DNA of 64,000 bases, taken from NCBI GenBank assembly GCA_021613535.1, contig CP075492.1, positions 14,880,001 through 14,944,000 on the forward strand. The letters are read 5' to 3'. Within the stretch, counting starts at the first letter, position 1. The number at the start of each line of letters is the position of its first letter. A program made the translations under genes and the position numbers. Origin of the DNA: Adineta vaga (Eukaryota; Animalia; Rotifera). This document shows, piece after piece, positions 1 through 24,036 of the stretch. The notes beneath the pieces were generated by a model. It was not told the origin of the DNA. It did not search any database and was given only the letters and a program-made list of their open reading frames with translations.

Positions 1-3000
1 TTTCGACCAGATGAAATGGCTCGTTTAGTTCCGTCTCCTTATGATTTTACATGTAAACGAGAGGATGCAAATAATATTCGAGATCAATTAGTATCAGTAA
101 CAACTGATTCGCATAGACATATTTGGTTTTCGATGCAAACCAATCCTTTTCATTATATTTATAAAACACATTCAATGATCAATGAAGATCCAGTGCCACC
201 AACCAAAGAGTATCCAGTTTATTGTTATTTTGGTTCAATGTATTCGTATAGTACTTTTAAAATTCATAGTGAAGAACATCCTGTTCGTCATGATCTTCGA
301 GTATTAAAATGGCATGAAGAACCCGAGGCAATACGAATTACGACGACAGATAAATCAAAAGAAATCTCTATACCAATCAGATGGATTCAAAAACCAATCC
401 TTGTTAATTTAAAAGATCGACCATGTGTAGTTTTAATGTTAAAATATTCGGTTAAAATGAAAAAGAGAATTAAAATGAAAGGTAGAGAGAAGTATGAACG
501 GTAAGATTATTCTGCTGTAAAAATGAGTCGATATCAAAGCATTTTACTTTTATTTAGAGTCTGTAAATCGGATGATAATCGTTTCATGACCGTTGTATCG
601 AAAAGTTCCGATATTCTTCTCTCATTTAGTGAAATCAGTCATACATATGCCTTTATTGAAGAACTAACACGTGAAACAGATGAATATCATGATAAATTTA
701 CAGTAAATTTCGTTACACTTGAACAAAATGTTGTCAAAAAGGAAAATCAATTGTTTTACTTACCGTCATCGGCATCACATAATCAACATTATGCATTAAA
801 CATGCTTTTCTCAATGGGTTATGTTTTTCATGATAAATATTCTCAACAACTTCATGATGAATTTGTGAAATTTGATAAAGATTCATTTAATGATATGTGT
901 TATTATTTGAAGGAAAAACTCGAACTAAATCATTGTTATCGTATCAAAGGAATCTATGCTGAATTTGATGCTTATTTGAAAGAAAAACGTAAAGACGAAA
1001 AGGACTTAGAAGAACCTAAACTACCTTATTGTGTTGGTTGTATTTCCATCACTCCATTACGAATTCTTTATCAAAAAATGCAATCAACAATAGGAAATCG
1101 AGCATTACGATTGAAAACATTTGGTGGTCCAGATATGTTCTTATTGGTACATATTCGTGAAGAAGATAATGGAAAATTAAAAGATTATGATCGAACGATG
1201 AAATTCGATTAAGATCGAAAATGTTCGAAGGAATTCAAGTTGTTGGAAAAATCTATCGTCTATTCGGTACTTCAACGAGTCAATTCAAAGAAATGTCATT
1301 TTGGTTTCTTGCCAATGGAAATAGAAGCATTGAAGATGCATGGAAAGAACTGGGTGATTTTTCAGATATTAAAAATGTCGCCACTTACATCGCTCGTATT
1401 GGCCTTTATTTCTCTACGTCGAAAGACACCAAAGTAAGTTTTGGGAAAACCGACAGAATTGAATATATTCTCAATTGATCCTACTAGATTTCATTTACCT
1501 ATGTGGATGAGAAAAAATTCGCATTGAATGAGAAATTCTCTGCAACAAAAATTCCGGATATAAAAACAGCCGATGATAAATATTGTTTTACTGATGGTAT
1601 TGGAACGATGTCTTTGGGTATTGCTGGGTTAATTGCATTGAATTTAGATATTCCATTATACACAAGAGAAGATATTCCATCAGCATATCAAGTTCGTATC
1701 GCTGGTTGTAAAGGCATGTTAGCAATCCATCCTGACTCAAAACTGGACGAATATTACATAAAAGTTCGTGATTCCATGCAGAAATTTAAATCAAATGATT
1801 GGTCATTAGAAATATGTGAACATAGTAAACCAAGTAAGTTGATTCATTGAGAAATTTTTGATAAGTTTTTTCTTTTCGTTTTTAGTGGAATTAAAATTTA
1901 ATAATCAAGTTATTATGTTATTGTCAGATTTGGGAAATTCATATGATGTTTTCGAATCGTATCAAAATGCCGCAATAACTAATTTACCTCGACAAAGTGA
2001 ACATGAACAATGGAGAAAATTGAAATATTCAAGTGCAAAAGAAGATTTATTAAAAAATAAAATTCCTTTACCACTAAATGAAGGACGAAACATGTTTGGC
2101 GTTGTTGATGAAACTGGTATATTAGAATACGGTCAAGTTTTTATTCAATATAAAGATTTAGATTCAACTAATGAAAATCGATATATTGTCTTAACTGGTA
2201 GATATTTTCTAACTAAAGAACATATTTTCTGTTTGATTATATTGTATAGGTGAAGTTCTGGTAGCTAAAATGCCTTGTTTACATCCAGGTGATTTTCGTC
2301 GTTTAACGGCTGTGAATGTCCCTAAATTACAAACATGTATACGTGATTGTATTGTCTTCCCACAAAAAGGATCTCGACCACATCCAAATGAAATGTCAGG
2401 ATCCGATTTGGATGGTGATCAATATTGGGTAGGAGAATATCGAATGAAAAGAAGTTTTAGGAGAGATTCGTTTCTCTGTATAGGTCTATTGGGGAAGACG
2501 TTTGAAAATTCGACAGATGGACGATCCATTATCTTATGAAGCTGCATCACCGAAAAAAGTACCAACTATAACTCAAGATATTATTGTTGATCATATTATT
2601 GATTCATTGGGTGCTGAAAGTCAAGGTATTATTTGTGATACTCATTTAGCTATCGCCGATTTTCATCGTGAACATACGAGATTCAAAGAATGTATATATT
2701 TAGCTGAATTATTTGCACGCGCTGTCGATGCACCGAAATCAGGTGAAACTATTAATTTAGATCGAGTTTATGAATTACGAGACGAATATTGTGAAAGATA
2801 TCCATTATTTATGAAAAAATATGATCGACCTGTACGAAATTCAGACTCAACTCTCAATAAACTCTTTACGAAAGCTAGAAATAATTTTTTTTCTCAACGT
2901 GATTCCGGAATATCATTACAATCATCATCATCAGTAATGCTAAAACCTTTAAAACAACAACAACAACAACAACATCAATCGAAAGTTGATTCCACAGATA

Positions 3001-16447: not shown

Positions 16448-17381
16448 TCAAGTATGTATTTACACTGATACAGTGCACGTGTCTTTTTACAAAATTATTT
16501 CGAATAGAAGATCGTACTTTCAAATAGATAATGAATGAATTTTAGAAAAGACAGAACATGTGATTATTCTTTATACAAGAGGACAGAAAAGATATTTTTG
16601 ATCGGTTACGTTTTTGCTGAACTGAATTATATTAAGCTATATTGGACATATAAGTTTCTATCAAATAATAGATTGCCCTATAAACATAATCTCTCTGTTT
16701 TATTGTAAGAATGAATGAAAAGGGAAATGTGTTGTATCAATAAATGTTTCCAAATGAGTAGAATTGAAGAGAATAGTCGATCGTTATCATTTGTAAGTAC
16801 TGAACTTGCAATACATACTTGTATTTTCTTCTGTAATGAGACTGCAGGTGTGAATGTGAAGCCTAACTTTTTCATCGCCGGAACCCCTACTGTTTTTTAA
16901 GCATATGGTGTTTCCTGAACATTAGCTGTATATAACAGAAGTTTTGAAAGCAGGAACGTAAGTAGTTTTAAGATATATACATTTCTAATAGAATATCCAA
17001 CATAGGCTTAAGACTTGAAGATTACACAATATCTTGACATATACATATGCACGTGGAGTCGTATCAGCTAACATTTGTGTTGAAACACAACGAGCGATTA
17101 TTAGCATCAGAAAGGTACCAAGCAATTACAAAATTTAGAGAGAGAAGACTCATTTTCGAACCATACTAAAGAACAAAGTTAGAAAGAAAGATTTCGATCA
17201 AACAAATCACTTATTTCAATTAATACAACTATTAATAAAAGCATTTCAAATAAATAGACTTGTTTTTTTTTATTAAATAATCGATCTATTGCTGATTAGA
17301 CAAATCCTAATGCTACTTCCAATAAAAAACAAGTTCATAGACTATCTTTTACATTTGAGCAAAGCTTATATAGTCGATCAT

Positions 17382-18597
17382 CTATTGTTGAATCTTGTGT
17401 TGTTGTTCATATGTTGGATAATCAGTATAACCTACTTCATTACCTCCATAGAATCCTTTTAAATTAAAATTAGTATTCACTTCTTGATTATTAATTAAAC
17501 GTTGTGCTAAATCAGGATTTGCAAGATAAAATCTGCCAAAAACGATTGCATCTGCTAAACCATCTTTAAGTGCTTGTGCACCTTGTTCATAATCATATTC
17601 TGTGTTAACAAATAATTTTGTATGTTCACCATTGATCAATTTTTTCCATTGAAATATATCAACAGGAGTTCCACGTTTTACCGGATCCCCTAATGCCCAA
17701 TAACGTGCTAATTGTATGTAAGTAATACGTCTGGCATTGAGCTCTTTAATTAAGTATCCATAGGTTTCAACAGTATCTTTTTCTGTCATGCCCATATCAT
17801 TATAACCACCACCTGGTGTTAATTTAATACCAACACGATCATTTCCATAAACATTGGAAATCTCATCGATAATCCGTAGTGAAAATCGACATCGATTTTC
17901 AACTGATCCACCCCATTGATCTGTTCGTTGATTCGATGTATTATCAATGAATTGATGTGGTAAATATCCATTGGCACTATAAAAGTTAAAAAGAAACAAT
18001 TTCTAATAATGGCGACAAGAAAAAATTATATAATACTTGTGTAATTCAACGCCATCAAACCCGGCTTCCTTCGCTCGTTCGGCAGCTCGTTTATATAAAG
18101 CAATATAATGTTCTGGATCATCAATGGCGACGGGTTCCACATAACCAGGTTTGCCAGGCAATTGTCGAAATTTTCCACCTTTAGCTGCTATAGCTGATGG
18201 TGCAACATTTGGTCGACCATCTTGCAAAAGTGGATGAGCAACGCGTCCAATATGCCACAATTGAAGAAATATCAAACCATTGTGAGCATGAACACTATCG
18301 ACAACTTTCTTCCAACCAGCAACTTGTTCATCGGAATAAATACCAGCTAAATATGCGTCAGATAAATAAAATAAATGAAAAGAAAACAATAATACTAACG
18401 TGCTTCACTCCATTCTGAGCCGAGAGGTTCGATAAATTGCCTTCTGTAAGAATAAGACCAGCACCAGCTCGTTGTGTATAATATTCGACTTGAAGTGGAC
18501 CAGGTACAAGATTTCGATCACGTGTTAATGATGCCATAACGACACGATTTTTGAGAACTAATGGTCCAAGTTTGAGTGGTGTTGCAAATGTCGTCAT
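17382..18597 (-). CDS. Old Yellow Enzyme / NADH:flavin oxidoreductase, copy 1 (3 exons; 1-bp frameshift near 18437)
   Basis: LKNRVVMASLTR, YYTQRA, FLQLWHIGR, AGFDGVELHNANGYL (across intron 2), RTDQWGGSVENR, FGRFYLANPDL, GYTDYP. Confidence 0.9.
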
Positions 18598-18682
18598 GTT
18601 GTAGTATGTGAAATGAAATGATGGTGTGTGTTTTTCTCCTTTACTTATTTATACTGATTATATCCTTTTTTTCTCGTTCTGC

Positions 18683-18713
18683 GCATTGTCATTGCTTATT
18701 TTTTGCTTCGTCA
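18683..18713 (-). promoter_or_regulatory. Two antioxidant-response-element-like sites (TGACnnnGC) upstream of OYE copy 1
   Basis: aTGACaatGC (18683-18691) and aTGACgaaGCa (18705-18713); the second is conserved upstream of copy 2 (22326-22334). Confidence 0.45.
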
Positions 18714-18897
18714 TCGTGTCAAGTGCATCGAGGTCAGCAAACATGATCGGTATACCATACAAACAGATTAAAAGAAGGAATTCGTTTTTCTTTTTTCTTT
18801 TTTCTTTTCTCTCATCCAAACATATGCTTATGACAGTGTCTTCAGGTGTTTTATTCGAGTAAGAAAAGAAAACATGAGAAAAGCTGATATAAATGGA

Positions 18898-20274
18898 CTA
18901 GTAAATAGTATGAAGAAGTTCAACAAAATTATTGTATCTTTTATCGGCTTTTCCATCGGGAAGAGCATGTTCAATAATACCTGCAAAATCTGATTGAGGC
19001 ACTTTATATTCACGTAATGTACTTGTTAAATCTAAATCCGAAAGAAGTTCTTTAATGGCTTCAGCAACTTTTATTGCTTGTTCACGTGTATCATCGATAG
19101 ATAAGGATGAATTTGAGGAAATAAAAGGTAAAAGTGAAGCAAGTTGTTTGACTTCTTGATCTGGTAAATGTTTAGCTTGAACGACTACTGTACGAGCTAA
19201 AGTCAAACATGAACAAATACCATGGGGAATAGAATATCTACATAAAATTTAAAAAAAAAACTCTAATGATTTTTACATAGGCTATACTTACGGTGATCCA
19301 AGTTGATAACCAATGGAATGTGAAGGTCCAAGAGGACCTAAACGATCATCCGACCAAAGACTTAACCAAGCACCAATAAGTGCTCGCTGTCGAGCTTCCA
19401 CATCTGTAGCATTTTTGTAACATGCTCGTAAGGATTCAAATAATGTACCAGCTGCTTCTCGAGCTAAAGCTCGAACAGGAAGTGGTGCATTGGGTCGATA
19501 CTGTTGTTCAACACAATGATCCAACGCTCGTATACCAGCTAAAAATAGAATTTACCATATTGAAAATCGAAATAAATTATTTGTTTTACTTGAAAGCCAT
19601 AAGCGATTTGGTGTACTTAAAGATAAATTGGCATCAAGAATTATAGCTGATGAACCAGTTTCACTAGATTTCTTCGCTATCTTCTTTCCTTCTTCATCTA
19701 AAGATGAAAATAGAATTTTTTTTTGAATATCTAATCAAAATGAAATCGTACATATGACTTACTAGTATAACCAGCACCTATCGTCATTTCTGCAGCAGAT
19801 AATGTCGTTGGAATACTGATTAATTTCAATAGGATACCTGTTTGTTCTTTATAAAAATGAATGACTAGTTTGGCAGCATCAATTGGTGAACCGCCACCAA
19901 CAGCAAGAATACCATCACTCTCAGTTTGTTTCAATTGTTCTATTGCCTGTTTAGTATCGTCAATAGGTGCATGTTGCTTAATCGATGAAAAAACAGCTGT
20001 TATTGAACATCCAGCAGCTTTCTTCACCTGTTCGATCACATCTGTTTTTGTTGCTAATGAATTACCAGTGATGATAAAGGCCTTTGAGATAGAAAAGTCA
20101 CGGAGTACATCTGCTAATTTCGAAAGTGAACCAACACCATATTCTACTCTTCCTTAAAATAAATTGATGTGTAATGATTTCAAACGGATCTACATTTAAC
20201 TTACGTAGAATAGTCGGTTCATAAGTTCCTGAAGTTGATGTTTGTAAAACCGATGGTATAATAGACGATGACAT
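18898..20274 (-). CDS. Iron-containing alcohol dehydrogenase (maleylacetate-reductase-like), multi-exon
   Basis: NAD-binding GGGSPIDAAK, IPTTLSAAE, candidate metal ligands DHCVE / SH / IPHG; ATG at 20274; short GT-AG introns link the ORF pieces. Confidence 0.9.
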
Positions 20275-20786
20275 ATCTATTAAAAAAAAGTACACGAAAG
20301 TGTATACGTAGTGAAACGAAAAGTCGTGTACGTGTGTTAAACGAAAAGAATGAAGAAAAGATAAACACTCGACTTTAAATATGATGCAGAACGCGCAAGA
20401 AAAAGAGATAAATGATACTATAGAATTGGAGAAGTCAGGATGTGGGTAGGAGTGTGATCTTCGCCTTTCATTTCCACCCACACCCACCCACCCTGCGGTC
20501 ATATTCGAACAAATTTTCGCTGCTTTTCGGTTCTCTTTTCCTTGAACATCCTCCTGTAACATTAATTTGCTTTAAAGAAGATAAAATGGATCTTGAGCCT
20601 GAGCACAAATGCCATATATATATACTTACTTTCATACTTGTCGTTGTCTATCATCTTTTCTTCACCTTTTTTCATGGTGAAAGTGTATTACTCAATCACA
20701 CTTGTCAATCTAATCACATATACGCACCGACTGATGTAATGTCTGCATCAATCTGTTGCAAGTATTACAAACAAAAAATACTGAAA

Positions 20787-20858
20787 TGTCTCAGCCAAGA
20801 ATCGAACTTGGGTTACACGAACTTCAGTCGTGTGTCCTCACCATTAGACCACTGAGAC
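20787..20858 (-). tRNA. tRNA with anticodon GAA (Phe) on an atypical body, copy 1
   Basis: GTCTCAG/CTGAGAC acceptor stem, D-loop GG, CACGA-CTGAAGT-TCGTG anticodon arm, CCAAG-TTCGATT-CTTGG T arm, discriminator A, downstream T6 Pol III terminator. Confidence 0.85.
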
Positions 20859-20992
20859 ATGCATATTTTAGAACTATAAGGTAGGTTTACTTTTCTATTA
20901 AGTTCTTTTTTATTATATAATCTATCTTCTATATTGAGAACAAGTTCATACAATGTCTTTCATTTTTGAATGATATTCATACGGTAGATCAT

Positions 20993-22215
20993 CTATTGTT
21001 GAATCTTGTGTTGTTGTTGTTGCTCGTATGTTGGATAATCAGTATATCCTACTTCAGTACCTCCATAAAATGTTTTTGGATTGAAATTAGTATTCACTTC
21101 TTGATTATTAATTAAACGTTGTGCTAAATCAGGATTTGCAATATACAATCGTCCGAATACAATTGCATCTGCTAAACCATCTTTCAATACTTTTGTACCA
21201 TCTTCAGCATTAAATTCGGCATTAGCAAAGAATTTCGTATATTCACCATTAATCAACTTTCTCCAACGAAATATATCAACAGCAGTTCCACGTTTAGCTG
21301 GATCTCGAGCTGGCCAATAACGTGTTATTTGTACGTAAGCTATACGTCGATTAGTAAGTTCTTTAATTAGATAATCGAAAGTTTCCAGAGTATCTTTTTC
21401 CGTCATGCCCATATCATTATAACCGCCGCTTGGGGATAGTTTAATACCAACACGATCATTTCCAAACACACCACAAATTTCATCAATCACACGTAATGGA
21501 AATCGACATCGATTTTCTGCTGATCCACCCCATTGATCGGTTCGTTGATTCGATGTATTATCAATGAATTGATGTGATAAATAACCATTTGCACTGTATA
21601 TTTAAAGATAAATGCTTTGTAATAAAACTGCCAAGAAAAAGAAATATCTTATACCTGTGAAAATCAACACCATCAAACCCGGCTTCCTTCGCTCGTTCGG
21701 CAGCTCGTTTATATAAAGCAATATAATGTTCTGGATCATCAATGGCGACGGGTTCCACATAACCAGGTTTGCCAGGCAATTGTCGAAATTTTCCACCTTT
21801 AGCTGCTATAGCTGATGGTGCAACATTCGTCGACCATCTTGCAAAAGTGGATGAGCAACGCGTCCAATATGCCACAATTGAAGAAATATCAAACCATTGT
21901 GAGCATGAACACTATCGACAACTTTCTTCCAACCAGAAACTTGTTCATCGGAATAAATACCAGCTAAATAGGCGTCAGATGAATAAAATAAATGAAAAGA
22001 AAACAATAATACTAACGTGCTTCACTCCATTCTGAACCGAGTGGTTCGATGAATGTGCCTTCTGTAAGAATAAGACCAGCACCAGCTCGTTGTGTATAGT
22101 ATTCGACTTGAAGTGGACCAGGTACAAGATTTCGATCACGTGTTAATGATGACATAATAACACGATTTTTGAGAACTAATGGTCCAAGTTTGAGTGGTGT
22201 TGCAAACGTCGTCAT
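20993..22215 (-). CDS. Old Yellow Enzyme / NADH:flavin oxidoreductase, copy 2 (3 exons; 1-bp frameshift near 21828)
   Basis: Same motifs and intron positions as copy 1; active-site region HSANGYL. Confidence 0.9.
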
Positions 22216-22923
22216 GTTGTAGTATGTGAAATGAAATGATGGTGTGTGTTTTTCTCCTCGCTTGTTTATACTAACCGTATCCACTTTTTTCTTTTCTCGT
22301 TCTGTGCATTGTCGTTAAATATTTTGCTTCGTCATTATATTAAGTGCATTAAGATCGACGAATATGGCCAATATACCATACGACCAGAAGAAAAGAATGA
22401 ACTTGTTTTTCTTTCTCATTTTTTTTCGTTCTGTCATCACAATCAGCTGTCTCATCCAAATATATCATATGTTGAAACGTTAATACAACAAATAAATCTG
22501 CTTTGATTGAGATTGTAATTCATCTATAACTATTGTTACACAGAGATGAAAGCTATGGACTTAATTTATCAGAATTAATCAGGTGAAGAATAGTATATAT
22601 GAATTTATACATACAATTAGACTATAGGCGGAAAAAATAGAGAAAAATACGTATAAAATAAAATTACTACAATAGGATTGTTGCCATCGTTGTTATTGAA
22701 TGAAATATATCTTGTTTCAGTTGATGTTCGTTTGAAAAGCTATTCCTTATACATATCTAAATGGTTCTCTTTCATTTCTTTCGTTTCTGTATGTCTCATT
22801 ATAAAACGAACTGCTCGTAACTAACTACTATTTCTCGCAATTTTGGAAACTATTTTAAGTGACAGGGAGAATAACAACAAAAAGTATGTATCACTCAACA
22901 GAAGCGTTTCCTTTTGTTTATTT

Positions 22924-23170
22924 ATGACTTCAAGAAAATTTGCTCTTCTTTTTAATTTTTCAACAATCCATTGAAGAAGATATACGATCATTTCATGTCA
23001 TTAAAGTTTTTTGTGAAATGACTTGTTTTAATCAACAGTAATACCAAATAATTAGTTTTCATCGTTCAATTTCTAAATGTGGATTGTTTGCTGATATGTC
23101 AAATCAAGCTCATCATCAACAACAACAACAACAACAACTTCTTCAACTACAACTAGCAACAAGTCAGTGG
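22924..23170 (+). pseudogene. Second, more decayed PAN/Apple-family remnant
   Basis: Fragments QQSIEEDIRSF and SFHRSISKCGLFAD resemble the 14864-15210 remnant; followed by a (CAA)n tract. Confidence 0.3.
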
Positions 23171-23576
23171 TTGTATTCGTAATCTATACCTATGAATATG
23201 CGTGTAGATATATATTAAACTTGAATCTTCTTTATCTCCAGAGTAAATTTCGTAACCTTATACATCTTCTGAACAAGATTTGAGAACTTCCGTAAAAACT
23301 CACAATAGATACAATTCGTTGCACAATTACCAGTATTTTATTGTAACTACGATGAACAACTGTAAAAAGAAATACCTTTGATGTACGTGAATGACATATA
23401 GCAACTTTATTAACAAAGGGAAAGGTATTAGATACAGATGGATATGATGGTGCTTATTTTAATTCTACTAAATTGTATGACTCATTTACACTTGTCAATC
23501 GAATGACTTCTATCCACAGACTGATGCAATGTCCGTATCAATCTATTGCAAGTATTACAAACAAAAAATGCTGAAA

Positions 23577-23648
23577 TGTCTCAGCCAAGAATCGAACTTG
23601 GATTACACGAACTTCAGTCGTGTGTCCTCACCATTAGACCACTGAGAC
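23577..23648 (-). tRNA. tRNA with anticodon GAA (Phe) on an atypical body, copy 2
   Basis: Differs from copy 1 at one position (variable loop TAAT vs TAAC); same downstream T-run terminator. Confidence 0.85.
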
Positions 23649-24036
23649 ATGCATAACTTAACAATAAGAAAGATCAACAATCTGTTACGAACAATGTCTA
23701 CAATGATTAATACGTCATGATGACACACTTTTATTTTTTTCTTCTCATCGAAGAAAAGAAAAGGTATGGCAACTCGTGAGACAACCATCTAGTCAGCTAT
23801 CATATAGAGAAAAAAATGCATTTCATAAGCGATTGAAATATGCACTTATGCACTTTGATGTGGAACTCATTTTTTAAGAGCTGAAATTTTACAGAAAATT
23901 CATTTATATAAAATAATTATTTGTTGTAATATTTACTTATTTGTTTGACTGAAAGTCAAAGTGTTTGACTGGCGACATCTAAATGTCGATACATCCATAG
24001 TGTTCAATTTTTTAATAGTTTTATCGCAATTGAAAA

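Follow-up and report, generated by a model that had tools for sequence, protein, structure and literature searches.

A 64-kb stretch of chromosome 3 of the bdelloid rotifer Adineta vaga, referred to here as the window, contains exactly two tRNA genes, both on the minus strand and both called tRNA-Phe(GAA) by ARAGORN, on bodies that differ from canonical tRNA-Phe. Our preferred reading, held with slightly better than even confidence, is that these low-copy genes encode a remoulded (alloacceptor-shifted) tRNA that would be charged by phenylalanyl-tRNA synthetase (PheRS) and would read UUY codons as Phe. We base this reading on two features of the family to which the genes belong, namely a tRNA structure kept by compensatory changes and synthetase determinants that switch as a set.

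According to this reading, two tandemly duplicated genes transcribed by RNA polymerase III (Pol III) would encode a minor, non-canonical tRNA(GAA). They belong to a lineage, known to date from bdelloid rotifers alone, that evolves fast while its cloverleaf is held by compensatory changes, and within which an alloacceptor shift between Tyr-type and Phe-type states has taken place. In A. vaga, the tRNA would be made and given CCA, and the cytosolic PheRS would charge it through G34-A35-A36 and A73, less efficiently without G20. The charged tRNA(GAA) would then read UUY as Phe beside roughly nine canonical tRNA-Phe genes, with no recoding. It would be redundant with the canonical genes and, because G20 is missing, probably a poorer substrate for PheRS.

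The two genes and the features directly around them are located in the window as follows.

20787..20858, minus strand: tRNA(GAA) copy 1, 72 nt with A73 counted, position 48 being C (A15-C48); found by ARAGORN, RF00005 and a family-derived covariance model (105 bits)
23577..23648, minus strand: tRNA(GAA) copy 2, 72 nt, position 48 being U (A15:U48, as in the metagenomic homologues); found by ARAGORN, RF00005, the family covariance model and alignment
20773..20778, minus strand: T6 run, Pol III terminator-like, 9 nt past A73 of copy 1; read from the sequence
23563..23568, minus strand: T6 run, 9 nt past A73 of copy 2; read from the sequence
20680..20786, minus strand: 3' flank of copy 1 in common with copy 2, 85% identical; sequence comparison
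23470..23576, minus strand: 3' flank of copy 2 in common with copy 1; sequence comparison
20859..20865, minus strand: TATGCAT directly upstream of copy 1; sequence comparison
23649..23655, minus strand: TATGCAT directly upstream of copy 2; sequence comparison

Both copies match the Rfam model RF00005 end to end (model positions 1-71 of 71) with 65.5 bits, compared with a gathering score of 29. Their RNA reads GUCUCAG UG GUCU AAUGGUGA GGAC A CACGA CUGAAGU UCGUG UAA(C/U) CCAAG UUCGAUU CUUGG CUGAGAC A, in which all 21 stem pairs are formed (U13:G22 counted) and U8, A14, G18G19, U33, U54U55C56 and A58 are kept, as are the A and B boxes. The variable loop has 4 nt in both genes, and U20-G20a stands in place of G20. 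Within the PheRS identity set, G34, A35, A36, A73, G30:C40 and A31:U39 are present and G20 is absent; G37 is present as well. Minimum-energy folding returned the cloverleaf for copy 2 and a near-isoenergetic alternative for copy 1, a result that is not decisive. The copies differ at 1 of 72 nucleotides, at position 48, compared with 16 of 107 in their common 3' flank (Fisher p = 0.0016), and upstream homology ends after 7 nt, TATGCAT being the sole upstream letters common to both.

These observations bear out most of a first-pass annotation of this DNA, which had been made from the letters alone. It had described two tRNA genes with an intact cloverleaf and a GAA anticodon on a body unlike that of tRNA-Phe, and the details it listed (U13:G22, the 4-nt variable loop, U20-G20a, G37, G30:C40, A31:U39 and A73) can all be read in the sequence. 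Its statements that the copies are more alike than their 3' flanks, that each is followed by a Pol III terminator, and that copy 2 has A15:U48 where copy 1 has A15:C48 were likewise confirmed, the terminators being terminator-like T6 runs and position 48 the only difference between the copies.

Homologues of these genes were found in moss metagenomes. JGI metagenomes were scanned with an exact pattern combining a Glu-type D-arm with CUGAAR, which retrieved two AT-rich contigs, L021 and L022 (moss metagenome). L021 carries an intact tRNA(GAA) that is identical to the A. vaga genes at 63-64 of 72 positions and scores 58 bits to RF00005. Six of its nine differences make up three compensatory pairs, from A:U to G:C at 6:67, from C:G to U:A at 27:43, and from A:U to G:C at 52:62. 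The same contig encodes a nucleoside transporter (ENT) that shares 75-87% identity with bdelloid proteins and 77% with the product of an A. vaga gene, and the contigs are therefore bdelloid. L022 holds the locus homologous to that of L021, with the same GAA anticodon arm. A further locus, L055, was reached via the ENT neighbours and comes from a 92-kb metagenome contig; its tRNA has the anticodon GUA, and its 5' and 3' flanks can be aligned with those of L021 and L022 as far as the edges of the tRNA gene. It is the sole relative of the window genes with another anticodon that could be demonstrated. The family thus includes homologous loci, joined by aligned flanks, whose anticodons belong to different acceptors (GAA in L021 and L022, GUA in L055), the A. 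vaga locus being without a syntenic counterpart.

The change of anticodon is accompanied by changes elsewhere in the molecule, as the states of the intact genes indicate.

GAA genes (the two A. vaga copies and L021): position 35 is A, position 37 is G, pair 1:72 is G:C
GUA gene (L055): position 35 is U, position 37 is A, pair 1:72 is C:G

The canonical genes of A. vaga have G1:C72 with G37 in tRNA-Phe and C1:G72 with A37 in tRNA-Tyr. In eukaryotes, the Phe identity set consists of A73, G20, G34, A35 and A36, to which human PheRS adds G30:C40 and A31:U39, and the Tyr identity set consists of A73, C1-G72, G34 and U35 (PMC9976931). Sites 37, 72 and 73 are among the most frequent covariers with nuclear alloacceptor shifts (Rogers and Griffiths-Jones 2014, PMC3923123). 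Judged from the aligned letters, our comparison demonstrates that homologous loci have undergone a GAA/GUA shift, in which positions 37 and 1:72 changed along with the anticodon. The shift connects GUA, A37 and C1:G72, a Tyr-type set, with GAA, G37 and G1:C72, a Phe-type set, and it may have run in either direction.

Between L021 and L055, five stem pairs have changed on both sides with pairing kept. In an alignment of five sequences, 97% of the stem cells are paired, and two-sided changes affect 12 of the 21 pairs, although one of the five is a second A. vaga GUA gene that has not been established as a homologue of the family. Covariation of this kind is seen between any two tRNAs, and the weight therefore rests on the pairs of genes with flank-proven homology. 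With its structure preserved by compensation and its synthetase determinants switched together, the family behaves like chargeable tRNAs.

We also compared the window genes with the other tRNAs of A. vaga. The closest were His(GUG) with 49 of 72 positions identical (68%), Glu(UUC) with 47 of 72 (65%), Gln with 46 of 72, and canonical Phe with 46 of 73; the canonical tRNA-Phe has G20 and a 5-nt variable loop, where the window genes have U20-G20a and 4 nt. Identity to L055 is 50-51 positions, so that L055, His and Glu, all of other acceptor classes, are closer to the window genes than the tRNA with the same anticodon. With their short D-loop and 4-nt variable loop, the genes fall by sequence into the Glu/Asp/His/Gln scaffold class. 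The first-pass annotation had called the scaffold Glu/Gln-like, and it was right about the class; a recent derivation from Glu or Gln did not hold up, the nearest tRNAs being His and then Glu at the identities given above. With a best identity of 68%, recent mutation of the anticodon in a Glu, Gln, His or Asp gene of A. vaga is ruled out. Origin from a His-like scaffold by way of GUG, GUA and GAA is a possible speculation, suggested by the 68% identity and by common letters in the D-loop, T-loop and variable loop.

The window encodes a phosphatase that matches A. vaga protein I4U23_015681 at 100% identity. A search of the A. vaga genome (100.8 Mb, 6 contigs) with BLAST, two pattern searches and the family covariance model returned only two copies of the tRNA(GAA) family, and the 107-nt 3' flank likewise occurs only twice. 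Two further D-arm pattern matches with 3 mismatches, at G000:C1:14854174-14854192 and 14857045-14857063 (2871 nt apart), are not tRNAs by ARAGORN. Nine canonical tRNA-Phe genes with the TAGCTCAGTTGGGAGAGC D-arm and GAA were found by pattern search and confirmed by ARAGORN. Because the RF00005 scan of the genome scored a subset of candidates only, canonical copy counts are lower bounds, and the number of canonical tRNA-Phe genes is at least nine. The first-pass annotation had set its reading against two others, in which the window genes are the lineage's ordinary tRNA-Phe or form a tRNA-derived short interspersed nuclear element (SINE) with hundreds of decayed copies and a common tail. The presence of at least nine canonical genes elsewhere in the genome rules out the former, and the occurrence of tRNA and flank only twice each rules out the latter, as well as any other retroelement module of many dispersed copies.

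Two other A. vaga tRNAs drew attention during this comparison. At G000:C3:635013-635084, on the plus strand (positions 1501-1572 of L044, which spans G000:C3:633513-636584), lies a single intron-less tRNA(GUA) with C1:G72, A73, an Asp/His-like scaffold and a 4-nt variable loop, coexisting with canonical intron-containing tRNA-Tyr genes; a tRNA-Glu(UUC) variant with A1:U72 is found at a distance of 160 nt on the opposite strand. This GUA gene may be another non-canonical tRNA of the same sort, its 48 of 72 identical positions to the GAA family not establishing homology. At G000:C4:4854406-4854477 (L045, positions 1501-1572, minus strand), we found a tRNA with the anticodon CUA, an amber suppressor, whose closest body is tRNA-Glu(CUC) with 57 of 72 positions; a C36A change from CUC would by itself account for it.

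Several observations weigh against a PheRS-charged, remoulded tRNA. G20, a PheRS determinant, is replaced by U20-G20a in the A. vaga genes. In L021 the pair 30-40 is broken by a U30-C40 mismatch, and in L022 the T-loop is split by an insertion of ~85 nt, so that the L022 copy is most simply regarded as a pseudogene rather than as a tRNA with an intron at a known position. (The insertion is AT-rich and lies at about 1345-1430 on the minus strand, and position 1 of this copy is mismatched as A1-C72.) L021 and L055 are 74% identical in the tRNA and 61-64% in the flanks, which makes the tRNA only modestly more conserved than its surroundings. L021, L022 and L055 may be either from different species or ohnologues of one genome. 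At syntenic loci defined by arrestin and phosphatase (DSP) genes, the fetched flanks contained no family tRNA in A. ricciae, A. steineri (four assemblies), Rotaria sp. Silwood1 or L066, and none was found at the ENT loci of Rotaria magnacalcarata, of four further metagenome or Logan contigs, or at both A. vaga ENT loci. Given this loss or absence, the gene looks dispensable. Contigs of one RNA run (X6) cover correctly spliced genes of the window, an iron-dependent alcohol dehydrogenase (Fe-ADH) and an OYE gene (OYE-B), and do not cover the tRNAs; this gap is uninformative, because assembled poly(A)-type contigs are not expected to contain tRNAs.

Many of these points would fit genes that are drifting towards loss, or that specify a non-translational RNA such as a source of tRNA fragments, with weak or no transcription and with the near-identity of the copies left by a short gene-conversion tract. 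The patchy presence across bdelloid loci, the disrupted L022 copy, U30-C40 in L021, A15-C48 in copy 1 where the family has A15:U48, the fast evolution of the tRNA body relative to its flanks, and the missing RNA coverage all point in this direction. We nevertheless regard this explanation as rather doubtful. A conversion tract would not end exactly at the 3' end of the tRNA, and the 97% pairing of stem cells, with two-sided changes in 12 of 21 pairs, argues against decay. In addition, the anticodon, position 37 and pair 1:72 change together as synthetase rules predict, which nothing would demand of an RNA that was never charged. Among the three readings offered by the first-pass annotation, the remoulded tRNA-Phe is thus the one we favor, whereas recoding and a non-translational RNA are without comparable support.

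Recoding would follow if the tRNA did not carry Phe but was mischarged with a different residue (such as Glu, His, Asp or Tyr, inherited with the scaffold) and inserted it at UUY at a low level as a form of regulated mistranslation. The Glu/Asp/His/Gln-type body and the missing G20 are compatible with this, and the Glu-like amber-suppressor tRNA of A. vaga means that its genome tolerates decoding tRNAs of unusual kinds. However, the synthetases of the scaffold type read the anticodon or features that are absent here. Eukaryotic His requires G-1 with G34 and U35, Asp requires G73 with GUC, and Tyr requires C1-G72 with U35, so that by sequence the His, Asp and Tyr determinants are missing (PMC9976931). 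The GAA genes have G1:C72 exactly where their GUA relative has C1:G72, and a passage of PMC9976931 cites a yeast tRNA-Tyr that is charged by PheRS once it bears a GAA anticodon. Mischarging therefore appears highly improbable to us. We give about as little credence, or marginally less, to a nuclear-encoded tRNA-Phe imported into mitochondria, or to horizontal acquisition along with the adjoining, foreign-looking OYE and Fe-ADH genes. Import would agree with the small mitochondrial PheRS, which reads mainly G1:C72, A73 and the anticodon (PMC9976931), all present here. Transfer would agree with the position of the tRNAs inside a block of two OYE genes and Fe-ADH, which in the fetched flanks is absent from the arrestin/DSP loci of A. 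ricciae, A. steineri, Rotaria sp. Silwood1 and one metagenome contig. Against transfer, exact patterns of the D-arm with GAA and of the D-arm with the T-arm, which are narrow, matched nothing in viral and prokaryotic collections, and the homologues in other bdelloid contigs adjoin an ordinary animal ENT gene rather than OYE or ADH.

A remoulded tRNA in bdelloids can be set beside several known systems. Nuclear alloacceptor shifts described previously (PMC3923123) also involve homologous loci with anticodons of different amino acids and extra changes at 37 and 72, but they concern recognisable, canonical multi-copy families of closely related species, whereas the bdelloid lineage is not close to any canonical tRNA of the genome (at most 68% identity) and changes quickly by way of compensatory substitutions. 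Remolding of metazoan mitochondrial tRNAs (PMC4783518) similarly yields a tRNA closer to another acceptor family than to the tRNA of the same anticodon; there, the remoulded gene replaces a lost original, whereas here at least nine canonical tRNA-Phe genes persist and the genes are nuclear and of the Pol III type. The yeast tRNA-Tyr with GAA, in the passage cited above (PMC9976931), provides an experimental precedent in which the switch from Tyr to Phe needs little beyond U35 to A35. That tRNA was an engineered transcript, while the bdelloid switch would be natural and is accompanied by a 1:72 flip that removes a determinant of tyrosyl-tRNA synthetase (TyrRS).

Nuclear alloacceptor shifts and mitochondrial remolding are therefore already established, and the bdelloid family is, on the evidence of its alignments, a case of what defines them. 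It departs from known shifts in three ways: it is an orphan without a close canonical parent, it evolves fast, and it coexists with a full canonical set. The nematode nev-tRNAs of Hamashima and colleagues (2012) reportedly have a long variable arm and are said to be charged with Leu according to their body. Like the bdelloid genes, these are lineage-specific, low-copy animal tRNAs in which body and anticodon disagree. In the A. vaga tRNA(GAA), by contrast, the anticodon is itself the main determinant for the predicted synthetase, and for this reason no recoding would be expected. Our literature search turned up no paper on unusual nuclear tRNAs of bdelloids.

Few animal sequences are as strongly conserved as the bodies of nuclear tRNAs, and this holds for tRNA-Phe in particular. 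A second type of tRNA(GAA) with an unrelated body, structurally intact across bdelloid lineages and with a GUA homologue whose acceptor-stem and 37 states match its anticodon, would thus offer a natural experiment in changing tRNA identity without mistranslation. If expressed, it would provide a test of the identity rules of animal PheRS and TyrRS on a non-canonical scaffold, and it adds to the signs, such as the amber suppressor, of unusual members in the bdelloid tRNA repertoire. If not expressed, it would reflect ordinary tRNA gene turnover. A broader idea, which we consider improbable, is that bdelloids keep a shadow set of orphan tRNAs that are low in copy number, evolve fast and have Asp/Glu/His-type scaffolds, hopping between identities yet held chargeable by selection. 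Beyond simple redundancy, they would have a specialised role such as decoding under stress or in certain tissues, or as a backup for damaged canonical tRNAs. In A. vaga, its members may be the window GAA genes and the genes at G000:C3:635013 (GUA) and G000:C4:4854406 (CUA).

Finally, we examined the surroundings of the two genes. Read along the minus strand, tRNA copy 2 comes first and is followed by OYE-B (20993-22215), tRNA copy 1, Fe-ADH (about 18898-20160) and OYE-A (17382-18597). The repeat distance is 3617 nt for the OYE copies and 2790 nt for the 191-nt tRNA unit, and no Fe-ADH remnant was found in the second spacer. A single tandem duplication of tRNA and OYE as one unit is therefore not supported, and the tRNA unit seems to have been duplicated on its own.

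The block at 17328-24000 of the window, which comprises the two OYE (Oxidored_FMN) genes, Fe-ADH and the two tRNAs, is absent from the otherwise syntenic arrestin-DSP neighborhood in A. ricciae, A. steineri and Rotaria, and it could consist of metabolic genes of foreign appearance that were inserted in one lineage. Within the block, OYE-B seems to have a frameshift in the assembly when set against its paralogue OYE-A; at window positions 21825-21828 the spacing between them changes from 3617 to 3618 nt and the open reading frame breaks. Contigs of a DNA-like run (X1) and of the RNA run X6, the latter spliced, carry one extra base at this point. The break probably reflects an assembly error of 1 nt or a difference between strains rather than a pseudogene.

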